A stretch of 64,000 nucleotides of DNA. Origin: Vitrella brassicaformis CCMP3155. Lineage: Eukaryota; Protista; Chromerida. The first letter of the stretch is position 1, and each line of letters starts with the position of its first letter. Below are positions 25,588-35,400 of this stretch, piece by piece. The translations under genes were made by a program, and so were the position numbers. Below the pieces are notes generated by a model, which saw only the letters and a program-made list of their open reading frames with translations, was not told where the DNA came from and did no database searches. The stretch covers positions 186,001 through 250,000 of the forward strand of contig CDMY01000227.1 in the NCBI GenBank assembly GCA_001179505.1. The letters run 5' to 3'.

Positions 25588-26560
25588 CCAGACAGCCATG
25601 TCGCCATGCGCACGTCTCGCCCCTCCCCTCGTTCTTCCTTCCCTTTATCTACCGACCTGCTGTTTTCGCCCATCTCATCTGTTCTTTTCTATTATGTATG
25701 CTGTCTGTTATGTCGTTTCCATCGCAAATTCGCGTGGTGATGCACACCTGCCTACCCCAGATACATACTTCGCCACGCCACCACACATCCCACCACACCA
25801 CAGACAGGACGTCTGGCTCGACAGATAGATATATGATTGATTGCCTTATTTTTGGTGGTTGGTTCTTCTCATCCTAACACTGTGGCGGGTGGGGGTACGG
25901 TGCGGTGCGGTGCGGTGGTTTATGGATCATGGCTTGGCTTTGTGTGTGTGACATGACGCGATGCGTGTAGAGGTAGACATACGTAGGTTGGGATGATAAG
26001 AGACGGGGTTTGCCTTCCTGCCTTCCTGCCTTCCTGCCTGCCTGCCTGCCGCTACCCTACCTAGCTACATGACAATGAATGGAATGTGACACTGACACTC
26101 TCACTCTCTCGTATACTCGCTCATCATCCAGTAGATATTGATTTCCACTAAGATTGCCATGTCAGCTGCAGCCTCCTGACGGTCCGGTCCTCCTCCATCC
26201 TCTCGCCCCTCATCCAGCGCCCTTGCACGCGGCCATTCCAGACACTCACGCATACCGGGTAGGCGCCGTGCAAAAACCGCAAGCAAGGGATCACAAAGGA
26301 TGGACGAACCAAGCACCTTGCCAGACAAGGATGGACCCTTACACTCTTCTCACTCGGGCAGCACCGCACATGGGCCGATTTCCCCCATCAATGGCGCCCA
26401 TATACGTTGGTCGCGCATCTTCAATGCAGAGAGGCGAGACCAGCGTACACGACCCCCATCGAAACGGAGAAAGCTGCCACACGGCCGCCCGGCCCTCACG
26501 CCACTCGCTTAGACACAGGCACACCACCCACCCAGGTACCAACATAAGTACACAGGTCAG

Positions 26561-29073
26561 TCAATAACGGGGTACGGTACTGTCGACCTGCCTGCTCCAC
26601 TCATCTACACCCCCCGCCAGGTTGACCACCTTCGTCAGCCTCCTCTTCTCACGCAGGTACTCGACCACCGCAGCGCTCCTCCGGCCGATGTGGCACACCA
26701 CCACCACACCCCTGCCGTCGTCCGGGATCTCCCCCGCCCTCATTTCGATCTCGTGAATGGGAATGTGGAGGGCAGTCACCCCCTCGGGCACTCTGATGGA
26801 GGCGATTGAGGTCTCGTAATCTTCCCGGACGTCTAGCAGGCAGCCGGGTGGTGTGGCTGAGGTGAGCCATTGGTGGGCCACCTTTGGGGAGATCTGCTTG
26901 ACGCCATGGGAGATGGTGGGGCCGCGACGCTTCGACGATGAGACGGAGGGAGCAAGGGGAGGGGGAGGGGGAGGGCCAGTCACCTGCAGAACGTGGGAGG
27001 GGTCATGTGTGCATCGCGTGGGCGTGTTTGTGCTGCGTGTGTCAATCGTTACCTCTTGTGTGTCGAAGTGGATAGAGATGCCGTCCTTGGCTTTGGTGTT
27101 GGGGATGCCCAGGTTGGTCACTGGCGGAGGGTGGCCCTCCATCAGCCGGAACCTCGGAAAACGCCTGCACACATACCATACATGCATACATGCGTCCGGC
27201 TCTTGATGCATTGCATTCATTGTGTGTGCTGTAGGCACACATCCGTTCGTACGCACCTGAGAATGAGGAATAGCGTGGCCTTGATGACCATCATCGAGAG
27301 AGGCCGGCCGATGCAGCTCCTCGCCCCAATGCCGAAAGGGACGAAGTGCTTTGACCTGTCAGAATCATCGCCACCCATCGACACCGGCAGAAATCTGCTT
27401 GCATGACAGCACACACAGCACCGAGACAGATTGGCCTTTTTGTGTTGACAGACTGACCATCCCTCCCTCCCTCCCCTTGTCAGCACACCTGCTGGGTCGA
27501 AATGCCTCTGGCTGGGTGAAGATGTCACTGTTTGCATGGTGCATACAGATGGGCACCCACAGGCCAACGCCGGCCGGCAGCACATAGCGAGAGGCCGACC
27601 GCCCACGCACCTCCACTGGGGCCGTAAGGAAGCGAGCACACGCCGCCCCCACATCCGCCAGCCGGAGGGACTCGCACACCACTGCGTGCAGAAAGGGAAG
27701 GGCGAGGAGGCGGTCGACGGCAGCACGGTCGAAGGGCGCGCCCACCCCTGAGAATGACGGCCTGGAAGGATAGAAAACGGACCGTTAGACTGTGCGTGTG
27801 TGGTTGCGTGTGCGTCCCCTCCTCTCACCCGCATCCTTTGGCGAGCTCCTGTACAAGCCTGTCTTTCTCAGACGGCGCGTTTGCCAGGTGGTACAACGAC
27901 CACCCAATCGCCGCGGCGACGTCGTCAAATCCAGCGAGGACGAGGATCAGGCACGTGTCGCGCACCTTCTCCACACTCCACCCCTTCCCACGCAGTATCC
28001 TCACCACAGTCACCGCCCCACTGTCACTCTCTGCTCTCTCAATCAGGTCCTCCAGGATGCGATACACACGCCCGACGGCCGTCCAGAAGGCCTGGTCGCG
28101 AGCAGCCCTGGGGCTGAAGAGCCGGCGAATGAGGGCGAGAGGGGAGGGTGCGGGGGACCCTTCGTAGGACTGCACCCTGGCTGCGATGGCGTCGTCGAAT
28201 GCGGTGCGGAATTCCTTGACGGTCTGGGGCGTGGCTGCAGGTCCGAAGCAGACCCGACAGATGAGCTCCATCGTCATGGACGGCAACACCGCCTGCATGA
28301 CACACACACACACACAAACGTGTGAATGAATGAACATAACACGTTTTTGGGTAGAGTCTGTGCCCTCATGTCTGTCTGTCTGTCTGTGTTGTCACCTGCA
28401 CATCAACGGGCTCCCCCTGTGGTTCCGTGACCCAGCTGACCACATGCCGCTCGACGCAATCAGCCATCACCTCAGCGCTCAGCAAGGCCTCGAGCGACCC
28501 ACTGATGGCGCCGGCATCTGCCGAGGGTGGTGGTCCTCCTCCTTTGCTGTGCGAGAGGATGGGGATGAGGACCCCCCTGTCCTTCTTGGCGTCTGCGGCA
28601 GCCAGACACATCAGTCCCGTGCGGCCCATCAGTGCGCTGCGGACTTCATCGAGCTGTGTCCTGTCACTCAGACGCATTACCTGCACCAATTGACACACAC
28701 AGACGTGACGCACCCGCTAGGCATGCATGGCTCGCCGTTCGCTCACCGTCTTGCTATTCTCCTCGGTCGGCGCCACACTCACGACACACCTGCCGTCGTG
28801 CCAATACGACGCAACAGGCCCATACGCCTCAGCCAGCCACGTCAGAAATGAGCCCAGACCGCCCTTGTCCGCGATGAGGGTGGAGTGATCTGGTCGAAAG
28901 AGTATCGACAGAGGGCTGCTGAAGATGGACAGGCCGGGGATCTGCCGCATGCGCCATACCAGCAGCAGCCGTCGGATGATGTCTTGGGAGAGCCACGCCG
29001 AGAGGCCGAGAAGGGCCAGTGCTTCAAGGAGGAAGACGTAGGGTGTGTGATGCTCCTTCACCGTCCTCAGCAT
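26561..29073 (-). CDS. Cytochrome P450 with N-terminal membrane anchor, fused to a C-terminal rhodanese domain
   Basis: Anchor YVFLLEALALLGLSAWLS. I-helix AGFDDV, K-helix ESLR, FRPSRF, and heme loop FGIGARSCIG (27307-27336). In-frame splicing (phase 2, then phase 0) leads to the rhodanese: LLDVRE...VVVCHIGRRSAAV...VVNLAGGVDEW...VPRY*. The start could instead be the upstream ATG at 29142. Confidence 0.88.
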
Positions 29074-30124
29074 CGTGTTCGCCTTTTCAAGCTTGCGCCT
29101 TCGTCGGTCGATCAGGCTGCAGCTTGTGGAGATTGAACTCATTGTCCGTCGTCTCTGTGTGCATGCCATGAAGACCATCCCATCATTCACCGTCATTGAC
29201 CATCATTGCACCTTCGCAAACGGTCTGGTCTCCCTCCACAACAGACCGACGTACAGACAGACATTTGAGTCTGAATTACAGCAGAAAAGCCCCACATCGA
29301 TCATGATGCACACAACAGAGACAGACAGACAGACAGGCCAAAGCTTTCCCTACCGCCGTGCTTTGCTTTACATATATTCCCCACAACAGATTTCTGTCTG
29401 TCGGCCGTGCGTGCCGTGCCGCCCGACAGCCATACGATCAGGGCAGGCCGCCTGGAACGCCAAAGCACTGCGAGAGGATTCGCAGAGATGACTGTCTGTC
29501 TTGTCGCTTCGCTTCATAGCATACGCAACTGCCGCCCGCCCGCGACATCGCGCATTCCATCCATCCATCCATCGGCCAGCCAGCCAGCCCCTTGATTGAG
29601 ACCACGCGGGCAGACAGAGATATAGAGAAAGTGAGTGCTAGATAGAATAGAATAGATGCGTCAGTCATGTCATCTACGGCAGCCAGGCACCCACCCTGCC
29701 CTGTACACATGACATACACACACGCATACAGCCACACGCCATACAGACAGACAGACAGACAGACACATCAGCACCGTCGCAAATGGATCAGCCAGCCAGC
29801 CAGCCTGCCAGCCCCGGTTCACCAAACGGCCATCGCATGCATGCATGCGGCACTCTGTGCACCACGCACGCACGCACTCAGGCAGACAGGCAGACACCCC
29901 GATGGAGAGAAGAAGCAGAGAACCCCTCGCCCTTTGACCCCTTCATTCATTCGCACCGGTAGACGACACCAAACAAAAATCATACCCACCACACCACACC
30001 ACACCCAGGATCACACGACATATGGTAGCGTAGCATCCCTCCCTTCCCCGTACCCAACCACCCCAACCACCCCCCACTAAACAGCCGGCCAGCCACCCAT
30101 GCATCCCATCGGCATGTCTTCACA

Positions 30125-31902
30125 TCACATGATGGCGCACACCGCACAGCACTTGTTTCGCTTCGTCGGCACCACCTCCACCGCCGGATGCTGCTTGCCC
30201 ACCCCCACCCCGGTGCCGTCTTTGCCCACTTCTTTCTTGTCGGGTGTGCCCTCGGGGCTGTTGGACCCCTCCTCGCCAGACGTCGCCACAGTGCTCGAGT
30301 TGGGCCGCCGATCCGACGACGGCGAGGCCTCCACCGCCGCATCCTCCCTGCCGTTCATGCCGCCTTGTCCCTCCTCCCCCTCCCCCTCCCCCACCAGGTG
30401 CACACACACTTCTGGTGTGTCCTCATCGGCAGCCAGAGGGGGCAGCGGCGGCGCCGAAGACACCTTGCGCACATCGCCTGTGGCTGCGGTGGCGGGTGCG
30501 GGTGCGGGTGAGGGCTGCTCGAACCGCAGTGAGAGGACCTGCAGGTCGATGGCCGGGTCGCTGAGAAGCTCCTCCAGCCGGGAGGAGAGGAGGTCGGTCG
30601 CCCTGGCGATGAGCTCCTCCCCTTCTGGCGGGATGGGCCGGCCCTCGGGGTAGGTCAGCCCGCACTTCTTGAAGATCTCCGGGGCCTCTGCCGACCACTG
30701 GATGGGCGTGCGGACGTCCCCCGCCCACAGCACGCCCTGGGAGGTGGTCTCATCGCAGGCTCGCCACACGTCGGGCACATGGGGGATGGGCGAGGTGGGC
30801 GACGGGGGGAATGCGAAGGGGTAGAATGCGGGGGGCTGGATGTCGGGGAGGGTGCCGCCGTACTGCTGCTCGAGCTGTGAGGGGTGGTACTCCTTGAGCA
30901 GGTCTTCCTGGAAGTGGTCCTTCATGAAGTTGATCTTCTGCTGCTGCACCTCTGTCAGGAGGCCCTTGATCATGGCCCAGAGGGTGGAGACGATCTTGGG
31001 CGCGTTGACGATGAACATCTTGTCGAGCCGGAAGGGGTACTGCTTGGTGAGCGTCGACACCATGTCCTTGAGCACCTTGATCGGAATCGAACGCAATGGC
31101 ACGTTGCTCAGGTCCACCAACACCTTGCACGTCTCAACTTTGCCTGACACACCAAACCACCGCAGAGGGCACGTGTGTGTGTCTTAGTACTCCGCTCCCT
31201 CGTCCCGTCCACTCACTCACCGGGGACGAATGCGTGTCTGAGTGCCCACTCGAAGACAAACACCGTGAGGCGTTTGAACCGGTCGGGGTTCTCCCTGACC
31301 TCCCTCGACAGCCGACTCAGCCGCACGATCGCCAGTGGCCGGTATGACGCGTCCCGCCCCACCCAATACATGACCCCGCTCTCCAGGTCCTTCCGCACCT
31401 CCACCTCACTCACGGGGTACATCTCGCGTCGCCAGTCGCGCATCAGCACCGTGTGCTCGACGGACTTGTGGAGGTAGTGGTGGGGGTGCTTGCGCTTGTT
31501 GTAGAGGAGGATGCGCAGGAGGAGTGGCTCCATCCTCGGGGGGAAGGTGAAGTTGTGCTCGCGGCAGTGAATGCGGAACTGGGTGATCATCTCCTGCTCG
31601 CCCTCGTCGAGCGGCTGGTGCAGGAAGACCTGGCGGATGACCACACCGTGGTGGAAGGACTTGTGCGTCTCGTCACGCGACGGCTGGTGGGCCAGCAGGG
31701 AGGCGGGCACAGTGTGAGGAGACGGGTTCGTCGACGTCACCAGCGCAACTTCCACCACACACACACACACACACGCACACACACAAGGTGGCAACATAAC
31801 GACGCGCGTCAATGTGAGAGTGATGTGTTGGTCTCTCTCACCCTCTGGAATCTCCGACGCGGCAGAAGAGTCCGGATGGCCATGGTGCGACTCGCCTCCC
31901 AT
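30125..31902 (-). CDS. Sec14/CRAL-TRIO lipid-binding protein with C-terminal CC..CaaX
   Basis: GVMYWVGRDASYRPLAIVR, VLVDLSNV, QYPFRLDKMFIVNAP, QKINF, SQLEQQYGGTLP. Ends KRNKCCAVCAIM*. Confidence 0.88.
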
Positions 31903-32433
31903 GGCGGCGGCGATAGGCACTCAATCAGTCCACCAACAAGACGACAGCGCTGCGCATGCACCGCACCGGTTGGCAACGGCACGGTCCGCCTTTGGCTACT
32001 TTTTTGAAAGACTTTGGCACCTCACCTCGCCGTTGAACGGCGGGCTGCACAGACACGACAGCGAGACAGCAAGACAAGCCTGTGACGCCCTGATTGTCTC
32101 AGAGTGTGAAATGGCTTTTCTGGCGGCTCGTGCTGTACGTACCTTCACTAACGAAGGCGCTCCTGATGCAGAGGAGCCTCCTTGTGGACACCGCGCCGTA
32201 CCGAACAGCAAGCAATTCCAAGTGCCCTGTAGACCAGGCCAACTATCCAGTATCGAAGAACGAACAGATTCGCCTCCCTCCACGAAGATGAGCTCGCAAA
32301 AGAAGAGCGATCCGTCAGAAAGAAAAGGAAAGGCAGACAAGGAGTGGAGGCAGCGACAGCCTCTCACAGCCACCGTGTGACCACCCTGTGGCGTCGGCGA
32401 TTCGTTTCGTCAGTCCTCAGCTTGGTGCGCAGC

Positions 32434-35400
32434 ATGTCGTACAAGATCAGCTACCCAGCGGCCGCCGGCCCGCCCAAGGTCACCCAGCACTGCAGCGCCT
32501 TCCTGTCGTCAAGATTCGGCATCCCCTGCGCGGCAGCCGAGCCAGATCCAGCATGCAGCAACGTTGCCCTCACTCTCCCAAGCGGCGAGTCGTTCCACTC
32601 GACGGACATCAATGTGGCACGATGTCTGGCGAGGGAGGCTTCGGCGGTGGCGGCAGAGGGCGGCCTGTATGGCACTGATGCACTGACAGCCAGTGCTGTA
32701 GACAGCTGGATTGACTTCAGCCGCGACAAGATTGGCTCGTCCCTGCCGCCGTCCGGTGACGTTCTGTCGCGCCTCAACGCCCACCTGTCAGAGCGCACCT
32801 TCCTTGTCGGCCATGCACTCACCATCGCCGACATTACGGCGTTCACTGCCCTCGGCGGCCCCCCCTCACCAACCTTCCTGGAGCCCTTCCCACACGTCCT
32901 GCGGTGGTGGGAGAACATATGCGTGGAGCTGCTGGGGCAGAGTGCTGCACCAGCTGTCCGCGACCCTACTGCTGCTGCCGCCAACCCCGTAAGCGGTGTG
33001 GGGGGAGAGGTGGGCAATGGCAATGGCAATGGGAACGGCAATGGCGGCGGGGAGGTCGGTGCGTCGACCAACTTCATCAAGCAGATTGTGGCGGCTGACA
33101 TCGAGAAGGGCGTGCACAAGGAGGTGGTGACCCGCTTCCCGCCTGAGCCCAACGGCTTCCTGCACATCGGCCACGCCAAGAGCATCTGCCTCAATTTCGG
33201 GCTGCCCCAGGCCTTCGGCGGGCGCTGCCACCTGCGATTCGACGACACCAATCCCACCAAGGAGGAGCAGAGGTTTGTGACACACACAAGAGCAGACCAC
33301 ATCACAGACAGCATAGAGGAGGAGAGCGGGTGTGGATGGATGGAGTGGGCTGCTGTGTGTGTGTGTATATGTCGGTCAGGTACATCGATGCGATAGAGGA
33401 GGACGTGCGATGGCTGGGCTTCGATTGGGGCGAGCACCTCTACCACGCCTCCGACTACTTCGAGCAGCTGTTCGAGTGGGCCGTGCTCCTCATCAAGCGC
33501 GGATACGCCTACGTGGACGACTCGACCAACGAGGAGATGCGGGCGATGCGCGGGGACATCACCAAGCCCGGGCAGGACTCGCCATACAGGAACCGGTCGG
33601 TGGAGGAGAACCTGGACCTCTTCATGCGCATGAAGGCGGGCGAGTTCGACGAGGGCAAGTGCGTCCTGAGGGCCAAAATCGACATGGCCAGCGGCAACAT
33701 GAACATGAGAGACCCGGTACGTAGATTAGGTGGGGGGCGGGTGGGGTGTGTGGGAGGGAGGGATGGAGGGAGAGAGGCAAGAACAGAACACACATGTTGA
33801 GACGCGACATACCATACAGTGTCTGTCTGCTGTGTGTGGTTGTTCGTTCACTGTATGTATCAATCAGGCGATCTACCGCATTTTGAAGCAGTCGCACCCC
33901 CGCACGGGCGACAAGTGGTGCGTCTACCCGATGTACGACTTCGCCCACGGCCAGTCGGACAGCGTCGAGAAGATCACCCACTCCATCTGCACCCTGGAGT
34001 TCGAGCTGCACCGGCCCCTCTACGACTGGCTGCAGGAGAAGCTGGACATCTTCCGCGTCAGACAGATCGAATTCGCCAGGCTCAACATGACCTACATGAT
34101 GACTTCCAAACGGTGGGAAAGAAACCGTGGACTGACTGCCCGATCATCCGTCCGTGTCAGCACACAAAGGAAGGAGCATTCTCTGTGTGTGTCTCTGTCT
34201 GGTCCATCAGGAAGCTGCTGGCGCTGGTCCAGGAGGGCCGTGTGAGTGGTTGGGATGACCCACGGATGTCCACACTGAGCGGCGTCCGGCGTCGCGGCTA
34301 CCCACCGGCAGCCATCCGCAACTTCTGCGAGAAGATCGGCGTGGCCAAGCGCGACAACCTCATCCACATCGAACAGCTTGAAAACTGTGTCAGGTATGTC
34401 ACAGAACACACACATAGACACACACATGGATTTCTCGATGGCTTCTTTCTTCATTGAATTCATGTGTGTGTCGTGTCGTTGATTTGATTGCAGGGAGGAG
34501 ATGCACGTGACGTGTGAGCGGCGCAACGCCGTCCTGGTGCCGCTGAAGCTGGTCATCACCAACTTCCCGGAAGGCCTCGTGGAGGAGGTGGACGCCCCAA
34601 ACCACCCCGAGGACCCCGACACGGGCACCAGAAAGGTCGGTCAGCTGCCCTATATATGGATGTCATGTCGTGCACGCTCTCCCTTATCCCATCAATGTGT
34701 TTCTGTGTCTGTCGGCAGCTGTCCTTCGCGCGCGAGCTCTACATCGAGAGGGATGACTTCATGGAGCAGCCGAGTGCCAGGTTCTTCCGTCTCGCCCCCG
34801 GCCGTGAGGTCCGCCTCAAGTGCGCCTACTGGATCAAGGCCACTGACGTGATCAAAGACGGCAACACGGGCGAGATCGTGGCCGTTCACTGCACCTACGA
34901 CCCGCAGACCAAGGGAGGCGAGGCGCCGCCAGACGGCCGCAAGGTCAAAGGCACGCTGCACTGGGTGTCTGCGCACGATGCCAAGAAGTGAGTGAAGTGG
35001 GCTGAGAGAGATACACACAGGGAGCAAGAGGCAAGCAAGACGGTAGGCGTGTGCGTGTGTGTGTGTATGTGTGTGTGCAGAGCTGAGTTCCGTCTGTACG
35101 ACCGTCTGTTTGCGAAACCTGACCCTGAAGAGGACGTGCCTGAGGGAGGCGACTGGCGGGACAACCTCAACCCAGAATCACTCAAGGTGACGTGACCAAC
35201 ATAACCAGACAGACACCCACCCACCCACTCCCACACTACACACACGTACGTCACAGAAAGAACCACCTCATTATATACTCTTCCGTCCTCTCAGGTCGTG
35301 CACGGGCTGACCGAGCCCTCCCTGGCCACCGCAAAGCCCGGCGACGCCTTCCAGTTCGAGCGTGTGGGTTTCTTCGCCGCCGACCCCGACACGGCCACCG

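Follow-up and report, generated by a model that had tools for sequence, protein, structure and literature searches.

The 64,000-nucleotide (nt) stretch of the Vitrella brassicaformis CCMP3155 genome analyzed here (positions 186,001 to 250,000 of contig CDMY01000227.1, hereafter the window) carries, on its minus strand from 29073 to 26561, a seven-exon gene in which a cytochrome P450 (P450) is fused in frame to a rhodanese, the persulfide-carrying sulfurtransferase domain. The encoded protein has 673 residues and is predicted to begin with a membrane anchor, on which follow a divergent P450, a Pro/Ser linker of 27 residues and, at the C-terminus, a rhodanese of the single-domain type. Comparison with RNA contigs from two studies revealed that the gene is expressed as one spliced mRNA that includes the P450-rhodanese exon junction.

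The gene model opens with an ATG at 29073-29071 and closes with a stop codon at 26563-26561, and the joined reading frame comprises 673 codons in which the terminal stop is the only one. All six introns have GT..AG borders, mostly of the form GTG...GCAG, and measure 66 to 103 nt; intron 5 (27256-27165) is in phase 2 and intron 6, at the domain boundary, in phase 0. In-frame ATGs lying further upstream (to 29196) were considered as the true start and rejected, because identity to the orthologous contig described below falls from 94% in exon 1 to 71% upstream of 29073, and because the reading frame of that contig begins at the same ATG. The original prediction, made from the letters of the window and a list of its open reading frames (ORFs), had proposed an in-frame fusion without an intervening stop, with a phase-2 and then a phase-0 intron following the heme motif FGIGARSCIG; the 673-residue frame, the Pfam domains and the spliced RNA contigs bear out the fusion, and both introns lie where they were expected.

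Seven public runs contain this stretch, and for the transcript analysis four of them (X1, X2, X6 and X7) were compared with window positions 26300 to 29400. Run X6 yielded a single 2709-nt contig that covers 29059 to 26300 without any of the six introns and continues for ~440 nt past 26300, indicating a long 3' untranslated region (UTR). Run X1, from a different study, yielded a 1740-nt contig in which exons 4-5-6-7 are joined and which extends into the 3' UTR. Both X1 and X6 contain joints skipping 66, 67, 94 and 92 nt, and no such joints were found in the DNA-like runs X2 and X7, X2 containing the whole stretch unspliced in one contig and hence being genomic and probably the source run. The joint at intron 6 is hidden by a poly-Pro repeat (26946-26984) and was therefore inferred from record coordinates: 36 contig letters span pieces that lie 105 bases apart on the genome, and the difference of 69 nt is the intron. 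A cDNA check across the P450-rhodanese junction had been proposed together with the original prediction, and the fusion passes it, as intron 6 is spliced in RNA contigs from both studies. Two adjacent genes joined by a read-through artefact were thus rejected as an explanation, since exons 6 and 7 are spliced together in RNA, no stop codon separates them and there is no Met from which a separate rhodanese could start.

Contig depth along the gene is uneven in X1, where the contig holding exons 5-7 and the 3' UTR (26300-27394) has a depth of 44.8 and the contigs of exons 1-4 (27648-29016) have depths of 5.2 to 5.7, a difference of ~8-fold; in X6 the one contig has even depth over the whole gene. 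The skew in X1 is probably a 3' library bias, a shorter 3' transcript being possible as well.

A HMMER search with exon 7 returned one close protein, P0001, of 191 residues and 95% identity, which is an ORF called on unspliced metagenome DNA and includes the exon 6 stretch. Its source contig in ENA (L003, 3464 nt) could be aligned over the whole gene with 87% nucleotide identity, and it retains the same seven exons, all splice sites and an intact frame of 663 residues. Exons are 92-94% identical between the two, introns 1-5 66-84% identical with many insertions and deletions, and the 5' flank 71% identical. Only two exonic length differences were found, one of 27 nt in exon 2 and one of 6 nt in the linker, and both are in frame. 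An apparent frameshift in exon 5 of the ortholog proved to be an alignment artefact, caused by a 5-nt GTGCG duplication just inside the intron, where use of the first GT keeps the frame. Because this independent contig shows the same structure, an assembly artefact, and with it a chimeric assembly, was rejected as the source of the fusion.

The number of synonymous substitutions per synonymous site (dS) between the two genes is 0.15, and the ratio of nonsynonymous to synonymous rates (dN/dS, Nei-Gojobori) amounts to 0.275 over the P450 part and 0.17 over the rhodanese, indicating that both halves are under purifying selection and that the fusion is conserved in the second organism. The two do not differ in the I-helix, the heme loop or the rhodanese loop. 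The 27-nt difference in exon 2 is a Gly/Pro-rich low-complexity insert (28500-28545) that is absent from L003, and by this comparison it is a variable, predicted surface loop in the N-terminal P450 part.

Pfam profiles were searched one exon at a time, with cut-offs of 22.8 bits for p450 and 22.2 bits for Rhodanese. Exons 3, 4 and 5 each exceeded the p450 (PF00067) cut-off, with matches collinear over profile positions 146-429, and exons 1, 2 and 6, taken singly, gave no Pfam p450 match. The P450 motifs are complete, comprising ESLR at residue 389, PEAFRPSRF at residue 443 and FGIGARSCIG at residue 470 with Cys477, all identical in the ortholog. The hydrophobic N-terminus and the basic, proline-containing hinge behind it would fit a class II P450 anchored in the endoplasmic reticulum with its catalytic part in the cytosol. 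The I-helix reads AGFDDV (residues 324-329, 27918-27935), again identical in the ortholog, and thus has Asp in place of the oxygen-activating Thr. In P450s the I-helix Thr is half of an acid-alcohol pair and ordinarily assists O2 activation; peroxide-using and substrate-rearranging P450s have commonly lost it. The absence of this residue leaves membership in the P450 superfamily standing but suggests that the textbook monooxygenase cycle is less likely here, without being decisive.

Placement of the P450 in a CYP family failed, as single exons matched CYP3A7, CYP11A1, a bacterial P450 and ApyO only weakly (PDB, NCBIfam), and the ESM Atlas annotation for this half is "P450" and nothing finer. 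No flavin, iron-sulfur or peroxidase domain was found on any exon (Pfam, E≤1), and hence no redox-partner domain. Loci with a reductase-type FAD_binding_1 profile match, which are candidate P450 reductases, sit on other contigs of the genome.

The P450 is followed, behind intron 6, by the linker VTGPPPPPPLAP, a flexible, Pro/Ser-rich stretch of ~27 residues that lacks regular secondary structure in an AlphaFold2 model of exon 7 (predicted local distance difference test score, pLDDT, 68-80). The model as a whole has a mean pLDDT of 91.6 and shows the alternating strands and helices of a rhodanese. A Foldseek search with the modeled rhodanese returned 63 matches in the PDB at E≤0.001, headed by rhodanese domains, many of them at a probability of 1.00. 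The top ranks are held by 3tp9 (metallo-beta-lactamase (MBL)-rhodanese, E 5e-7), 3icr (CoADR-RHD) and 5ve3 (persulfide dioxygenase (PDO)-rhodanese), followed by NADH- and CoA-persulfide reductases (3nta, 6pfz, 8a56) and then by Uba4/MOCS3. The best NCBIfam families are the MoeB/MoeZ C-terminal domain (E ~1e-10 to 6e-8) and, after it, GlpE. In an alignment of 64 relatives the loop Cys, Gly and Arg (Cys97, Gly100 and Arg102 in exon 7 numbers) are invariant, as is the C-terminal ...VPRY, and the CHIGRRS loop aligns with the loops of the solved rhodaneses 3gk5, 3foj and 6mxv. The loop is of the six-residue CX4R sulfurtransferase type; a Cdc25/Acr2-type phosphatase or arsenate reductase was rejected, as there is no seven-residue CX5R loop and Cdc25A ranks only 27th, with a root-mean-square deviation (rmsd) of 5.1 Å. 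By profile, loop and predicted fold, the rhodanese is thus of the catalytic type and motif-intact, in agreement with the earlier reading of a catalytic-type single domain, whose coordinates for CHIGRRS (26675-26695) were exact. The first in-frame Met of exon 7 comes no earlier than residue 614, and the rhodanese therefore cannot be translated alone.

The nearest named relatives of this domain are bacterial "rhodanese-related sulfurtransferases" from metagenome-assembled genomes of Pseudomonadota, Planctomycetota and Actinomycetota, with 43-55% identity, whereas the match elsewhere in the V. brassicaformis genome reaches 37%. The whole rhodanese is encoded by the last exon, which follows a phase-0 intron, whereas five introns split the P450, and the GC content at third codon positions (GC3) is 0.76 in exon 7 and 0.75 in the rest of the gene. 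The single phase-0 terminal exon, the bacterial-type closest kin and the equal GC3 together suggest an old capture of a bacterial-type rhodanese as terminal exon. The locus of the nearest bacterial rhodanese was uninformative, harboring two-component, HslV-type and ubiquinone genes and no P450.

The rarity of the architecture was assessed by a HMMER search with exon 7 against 1.84 billion representatives, which gave 2688 matches, the best 150 of which were examined. Among these 150, no P450 fusion was found save P0001; the rest are single-domain proteins of ~110 residues, MoeZ-type ThiF-rhodanese proteins and multi-rhodanese proteins, and the six that are long enough to hold a P450 are all rhodanese repeats without a p450 domain. 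When the stop-free sequence running from exon 6 through intron 6 into exon 7 was used in a word search, P0001 alone covered both parts, under a length filter that hides full-length proteins, and a word search with exon 3 returned the ortholog product only. These searches can detect only fusions in which the rhodanese is similar to this one; other rhodanese subfamilies, and architecture queries of Chromera and other eukaryotic proteomes, lie outside their scope. The organism's own genome (72.7 Mb, 1064 contigs) contains at least 18 P450 and seven rhodanese loci, among which this pair alone is adjacent; paralogs of the gene were sought and none were found, exon 4 matching only itself. Full-text literature searches gave no description of a P450-rhodanese fusion. 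As far as these searches reach, the architecture therefore appears to be undescribed and known from two organisms, and the earlier suspicion that it was new held within the literature and the 150 best HMMER matches.

Several characterized systems resemble parts of this protein. CoADR-RHD (3icr), Npsr (3nta, 6pfz) and CoA-persulfide reductase (8a56) likewise consist of a redox domain followed by a C-terminal single rhodanese with a catalytic Cys, and their rhodaneses superimpose on the model with an rmsd of 1.8-2.9 Å over ~103-113 aligned columns at 22-33% identity, 6pfz also matching modestly in sequence (E 7.9e-5). In enzymes of this type the rhodanese Cys brings sulfane sulfur to the redox site. 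They are, however, soluble bacterial and archaeal FAD-dependent pyridine-nucleotide disulfide oxidoreductases, whereas the redox domain here is a heme-thiolate P450. The PDO-rhodanese PRF (5ve3) and the MBL-rhodanese (3tp9) join an oxygen-using metalloenzyme to a C-terminal catalytic rhodanese, the two domains acting sequentially on sulfane sulfur; their metal center is a mononuclear non-heme iron in a metallo-beta-lactamase fold, in contrast to the P450 heme. As the N-terminal domain is a P450, our protein falls outside these rhodanese-tailed reductases and dioxygenases and shares with them the rhodanese tail and the domain order alone, so that the resemblance may point to a possible mode of action but not to membership. 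The rhodaneses of MoeZ/MoeB, MOCS3 and Uba4 have in common with it the ...D..VPRY ending and a CH.G.RS-type loop, and 3i2v and 6yub are structural matches; in those proteins, however, the rhodanese follows a ThiF-type adenylyltransferase and loads a ubiquitin-like sulfur carrier, and no ThiF domain was found in this gene (Pfam).

Natural P450 fusions likewise join a P450 and a second functional domain in one polypeptide, the known examples including BM3/CYP102 with cytochrome P450 reductase, CYP116B with a phthalate-dioxygenase-reductase-like domain, fusions to flavodoxin or ferredoxin, and the PpoA-type dioxygenase-P450s. The partners in these fusions carry redox cofactors or a second heme, whereas a rhodanese has none, and the present protein stands apart from the self-sufficient P450-redox-partner class (CYP102, CYP116B) in having no fused flavin or iron-sulfur reductase domain. 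Lastly, C-S-forming P450s such as CxnD in chuangxinmycin biosynthesis combine P450 chemistry with sulfur supplied via rhodanese/MoeZ-type chemistry, but their sulfur machinery is encoded separately and acts by way of a carrier-protein thiocarboxylate.

Our preferred interpretation, to which we assign a probability of roughly 40%, is that the tethered rhodanese acts in cis as a carrier of sulfane sulfur for the P450. This reading is drawn from the best structural matches of the rhodanese, which are rhodanese-tailed persulfide redox enzymes (CoADR-RHD, Npsr and PDO-rhodanese). Cys630 would be loaded as a persulfide, from thiosulfate or from a low-molecular-weight persulfide, and the long linker would let the rhodanese swing to the P450, where sulfur could be added to a reactive P450 intermediate or product to form a C-S bond. 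Alternatively, the Cys630 persulfide might itself be the species oxidized by the heme iron. A P450 without the I-helix Thr may not run the ordinary O2-activation cycle. The absence of this Thr, and the finding that the nearest structural analogues are rhodaneses fused to persulfide-handling redox enzymes, are features beyond the original prediction. A direct supply of electrons from the rhodanese to the P450, one of three possible roles raised with the original prediction beside persulfide delivery for C-S chemistry and the detoxification of cyanide, is unlikely, because the rhodanese has no redox cofactor and because the FAD_binding_1 reductase-type loci lie elsewhere in the genome. More speculative, and in our estimate doubtful as a whole, is the proposal that this is the first P450 with a built-in sulfur-delivery domain, acting as a heme-dependent persulfide oxygenase or as a C-S-forming P450 supplied in cis, and made in the chromerid lineage by capture of a bacterial-type rhodanese exon.

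Several observations weigh against a tethered sulfur carrier. The I-helix Thr is also absent in ordinary O2-using P450s, for example EryF. Rhodanese domains are promiscuous fusion partners and are sometimes mere redox switches. The single-exon PDB, NCBIfam and word searches returned no close relatives of the P450 that would hint at a substrate, and a dibasic-type KRR site lies inside the linker, where the polypeptide could be cleaved. Cleavage there into two independent enzymes, or a recent accidental capture of the rhodanese exon, would mean that the halves have no joint function. Such a reading would be consistent with the confinement of the rhodanese to one terminal phase-0 exon while the P450 is cut by five introns, with bacterial-type single-domain kin that are closer to the rhodanese than is its own-genome match, and with the finding of the fusion in one lineage only. 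We regard it nevertheless as very improbable, since a second organism retains the fusion at a dS of 0.15 with purifying selection on both halves and preservation of the linker frame, the matching GC3 of exon 7 argues that the capture was not recent, a separate rhodanese would have no start codon, and the predicted topology would leave the linker on the cytosolic side, apart from dibasic-site proteases.

A rhodanese at this position could also be explained as a protective module or as a switch that senses redox state or persulfides: Cys630 would control the P450 by becoming oxidized or persulfidated, or the domain would remove peroxide arising from uncoupled turnover. The Cys of rhodaneses is readily S-sulfhydrated and S-nitrosylated, as the YgaP structures among the Foldseek matches show, and a P450 without the I-helix Thr may uncouple easily. 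The loop, however, retains two Arg and a Ser, as anion-binding catalytic sulfurtransferases typically do, the closest kin of the domain are of the catalytic type, and the literature searches turned up no regulatory precedent for P450s, so that we consider this explanation rather unlikely, if a serious one. A further reading is sequential detoxification, in which the P450 would release cyanide, sulfite or another thiophile and the tethered rhodanese would convert it at once, cyanide and sulfane sulfur giving thiocyanate. Thiosulfate:cyanide sulfurtransferase is the classic textbook reaction of rhodanese, the loop is of the catalytic type, and the PDO-rhodanese fusions (5ve3, a top structural match) process the product of the neighboring domain in a like manner. 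Against this, the only profiles that the exons match are generic P450 ones, their matches to unrelated P450s of bacteria and animals are weak, and there is no sign of a cyanogenic CYP79/CYP71E-like lineage, nor do we know of a cyanogenic pathway in chromerids; detoxification thus seems improbable.

Both the engineering of P450s and the understanding of their mechanism have drawn on natural fusions, and to our knowledge nearly all known P450 fusion partners supply electrons. A P450 partner that carries sulfane sulfur, if confirmed, would represent a new logic in which oxidation is tied to sulfur transfer in one polypeptide, and would bear on C-S bond making in natural products and on the eukaryotic handling of reactive sulfur species. 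The gene also offers a clean example of domain gain via a phase-0 terminal exon in a single-celled alga related to the apicomplexan (malaria) parasites. With its domains, catalytic residues and transcript now defined, the case is directly testable. The coordinates of its parts are collected in Table 1.

Table 1. Parts of the P450-rhodanese gene, in window coordinates, with predicted domain content.
Feature	Position	Strand	Content
Exon 1	28747-29073	-	Start codon; hydrophobic anchor (residues 10-28), then RMRQIPG
Exon 2	28396-28680	-	N-terminal P450 part with low-complexity insert in the GGGPPPSAD region
Exon 3	27829-28292	-	P450 core including I-helix; Pfam p450 27.7 bits, profile positions 146-303
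Exon 4	27489-27761	-	K-helix ESLR (residues 389-392) and start of PERF motif (PEAFRPSRF, ends in exon 5); Pfam p450 42.7 bits
Exon 5	27257-27394	-	Heme loop FGIGARSCIG (27307-27336), axial ligand Cys477, L-helix; Pfam p450 32.5 bits
Exon 6	27053-27164	-	Last 37 residues of P450 fold, end HFDTQE
Intron 6	26984-27052	-	69 nt, phase 0, at P450/rhodanese domain boundary
Exon 7	26561-26983	-	
Pro/Ser-rich linker VTGPPPPPPLAPSVSSSKRRGPTISHG	26903-26983	-	Residues 534-560
Single-domain rhodanese	26564-26902	-	Residues 561-673, wholly inside exon 7; PF00581 33.6 bits
Rhodanese active-site loop CHIGRRS with Cys630	26675-26695	-	Residues 630-636

Intron 6 differs from the other introns in its conservation. 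Between the window and L003 (2460-2528) it is 94% identical, with four mismatches and no insertions or deletions, and thus as conserved as the exons, whereas the other five introns reach 66-84% (Fisher p 0.002). In both organisms it lacks stop codons and keeps the frame; it is read through in the ORF at 26561-27256 as well as in P0001, and a transcript retaining it would encode a linker longer by 23 residues. Three residues would be altered by the four differences, which hence give no sign of coding constraint. Intron 6 may be alternatively retained, or may bear a regulatory element.

In the upstream neighbor of the gene (30125-31920, minus strand), two or more exons code for a CRAL/TRIO domain (Sec14-like, lipid-binding), behind which comes an extended low-complexity tail. 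Beyond it, on the plus strand at 32344-33393, lies an ORF in which a GST_C-like domain precedes the first part of the catalytic domain of a class I Glu/Gln-tRNA synthetase; an appended N-terminal domain of the GST_C type is typical of eukaryotic glutamyl-tRNA synthetase. These two neighbors yield no functional hint for the fusion. Within the gene and beside it, (GACA)n/(CTGT)n microsatellites are located at 28369-28387 in intron 2 and at 29319-29338 in the 5' flank. Contig depth rises 10- to 80-fold at both in all four runs and many false joints connect them, and the motif is therefore dispersed in the genome at very high copy number.

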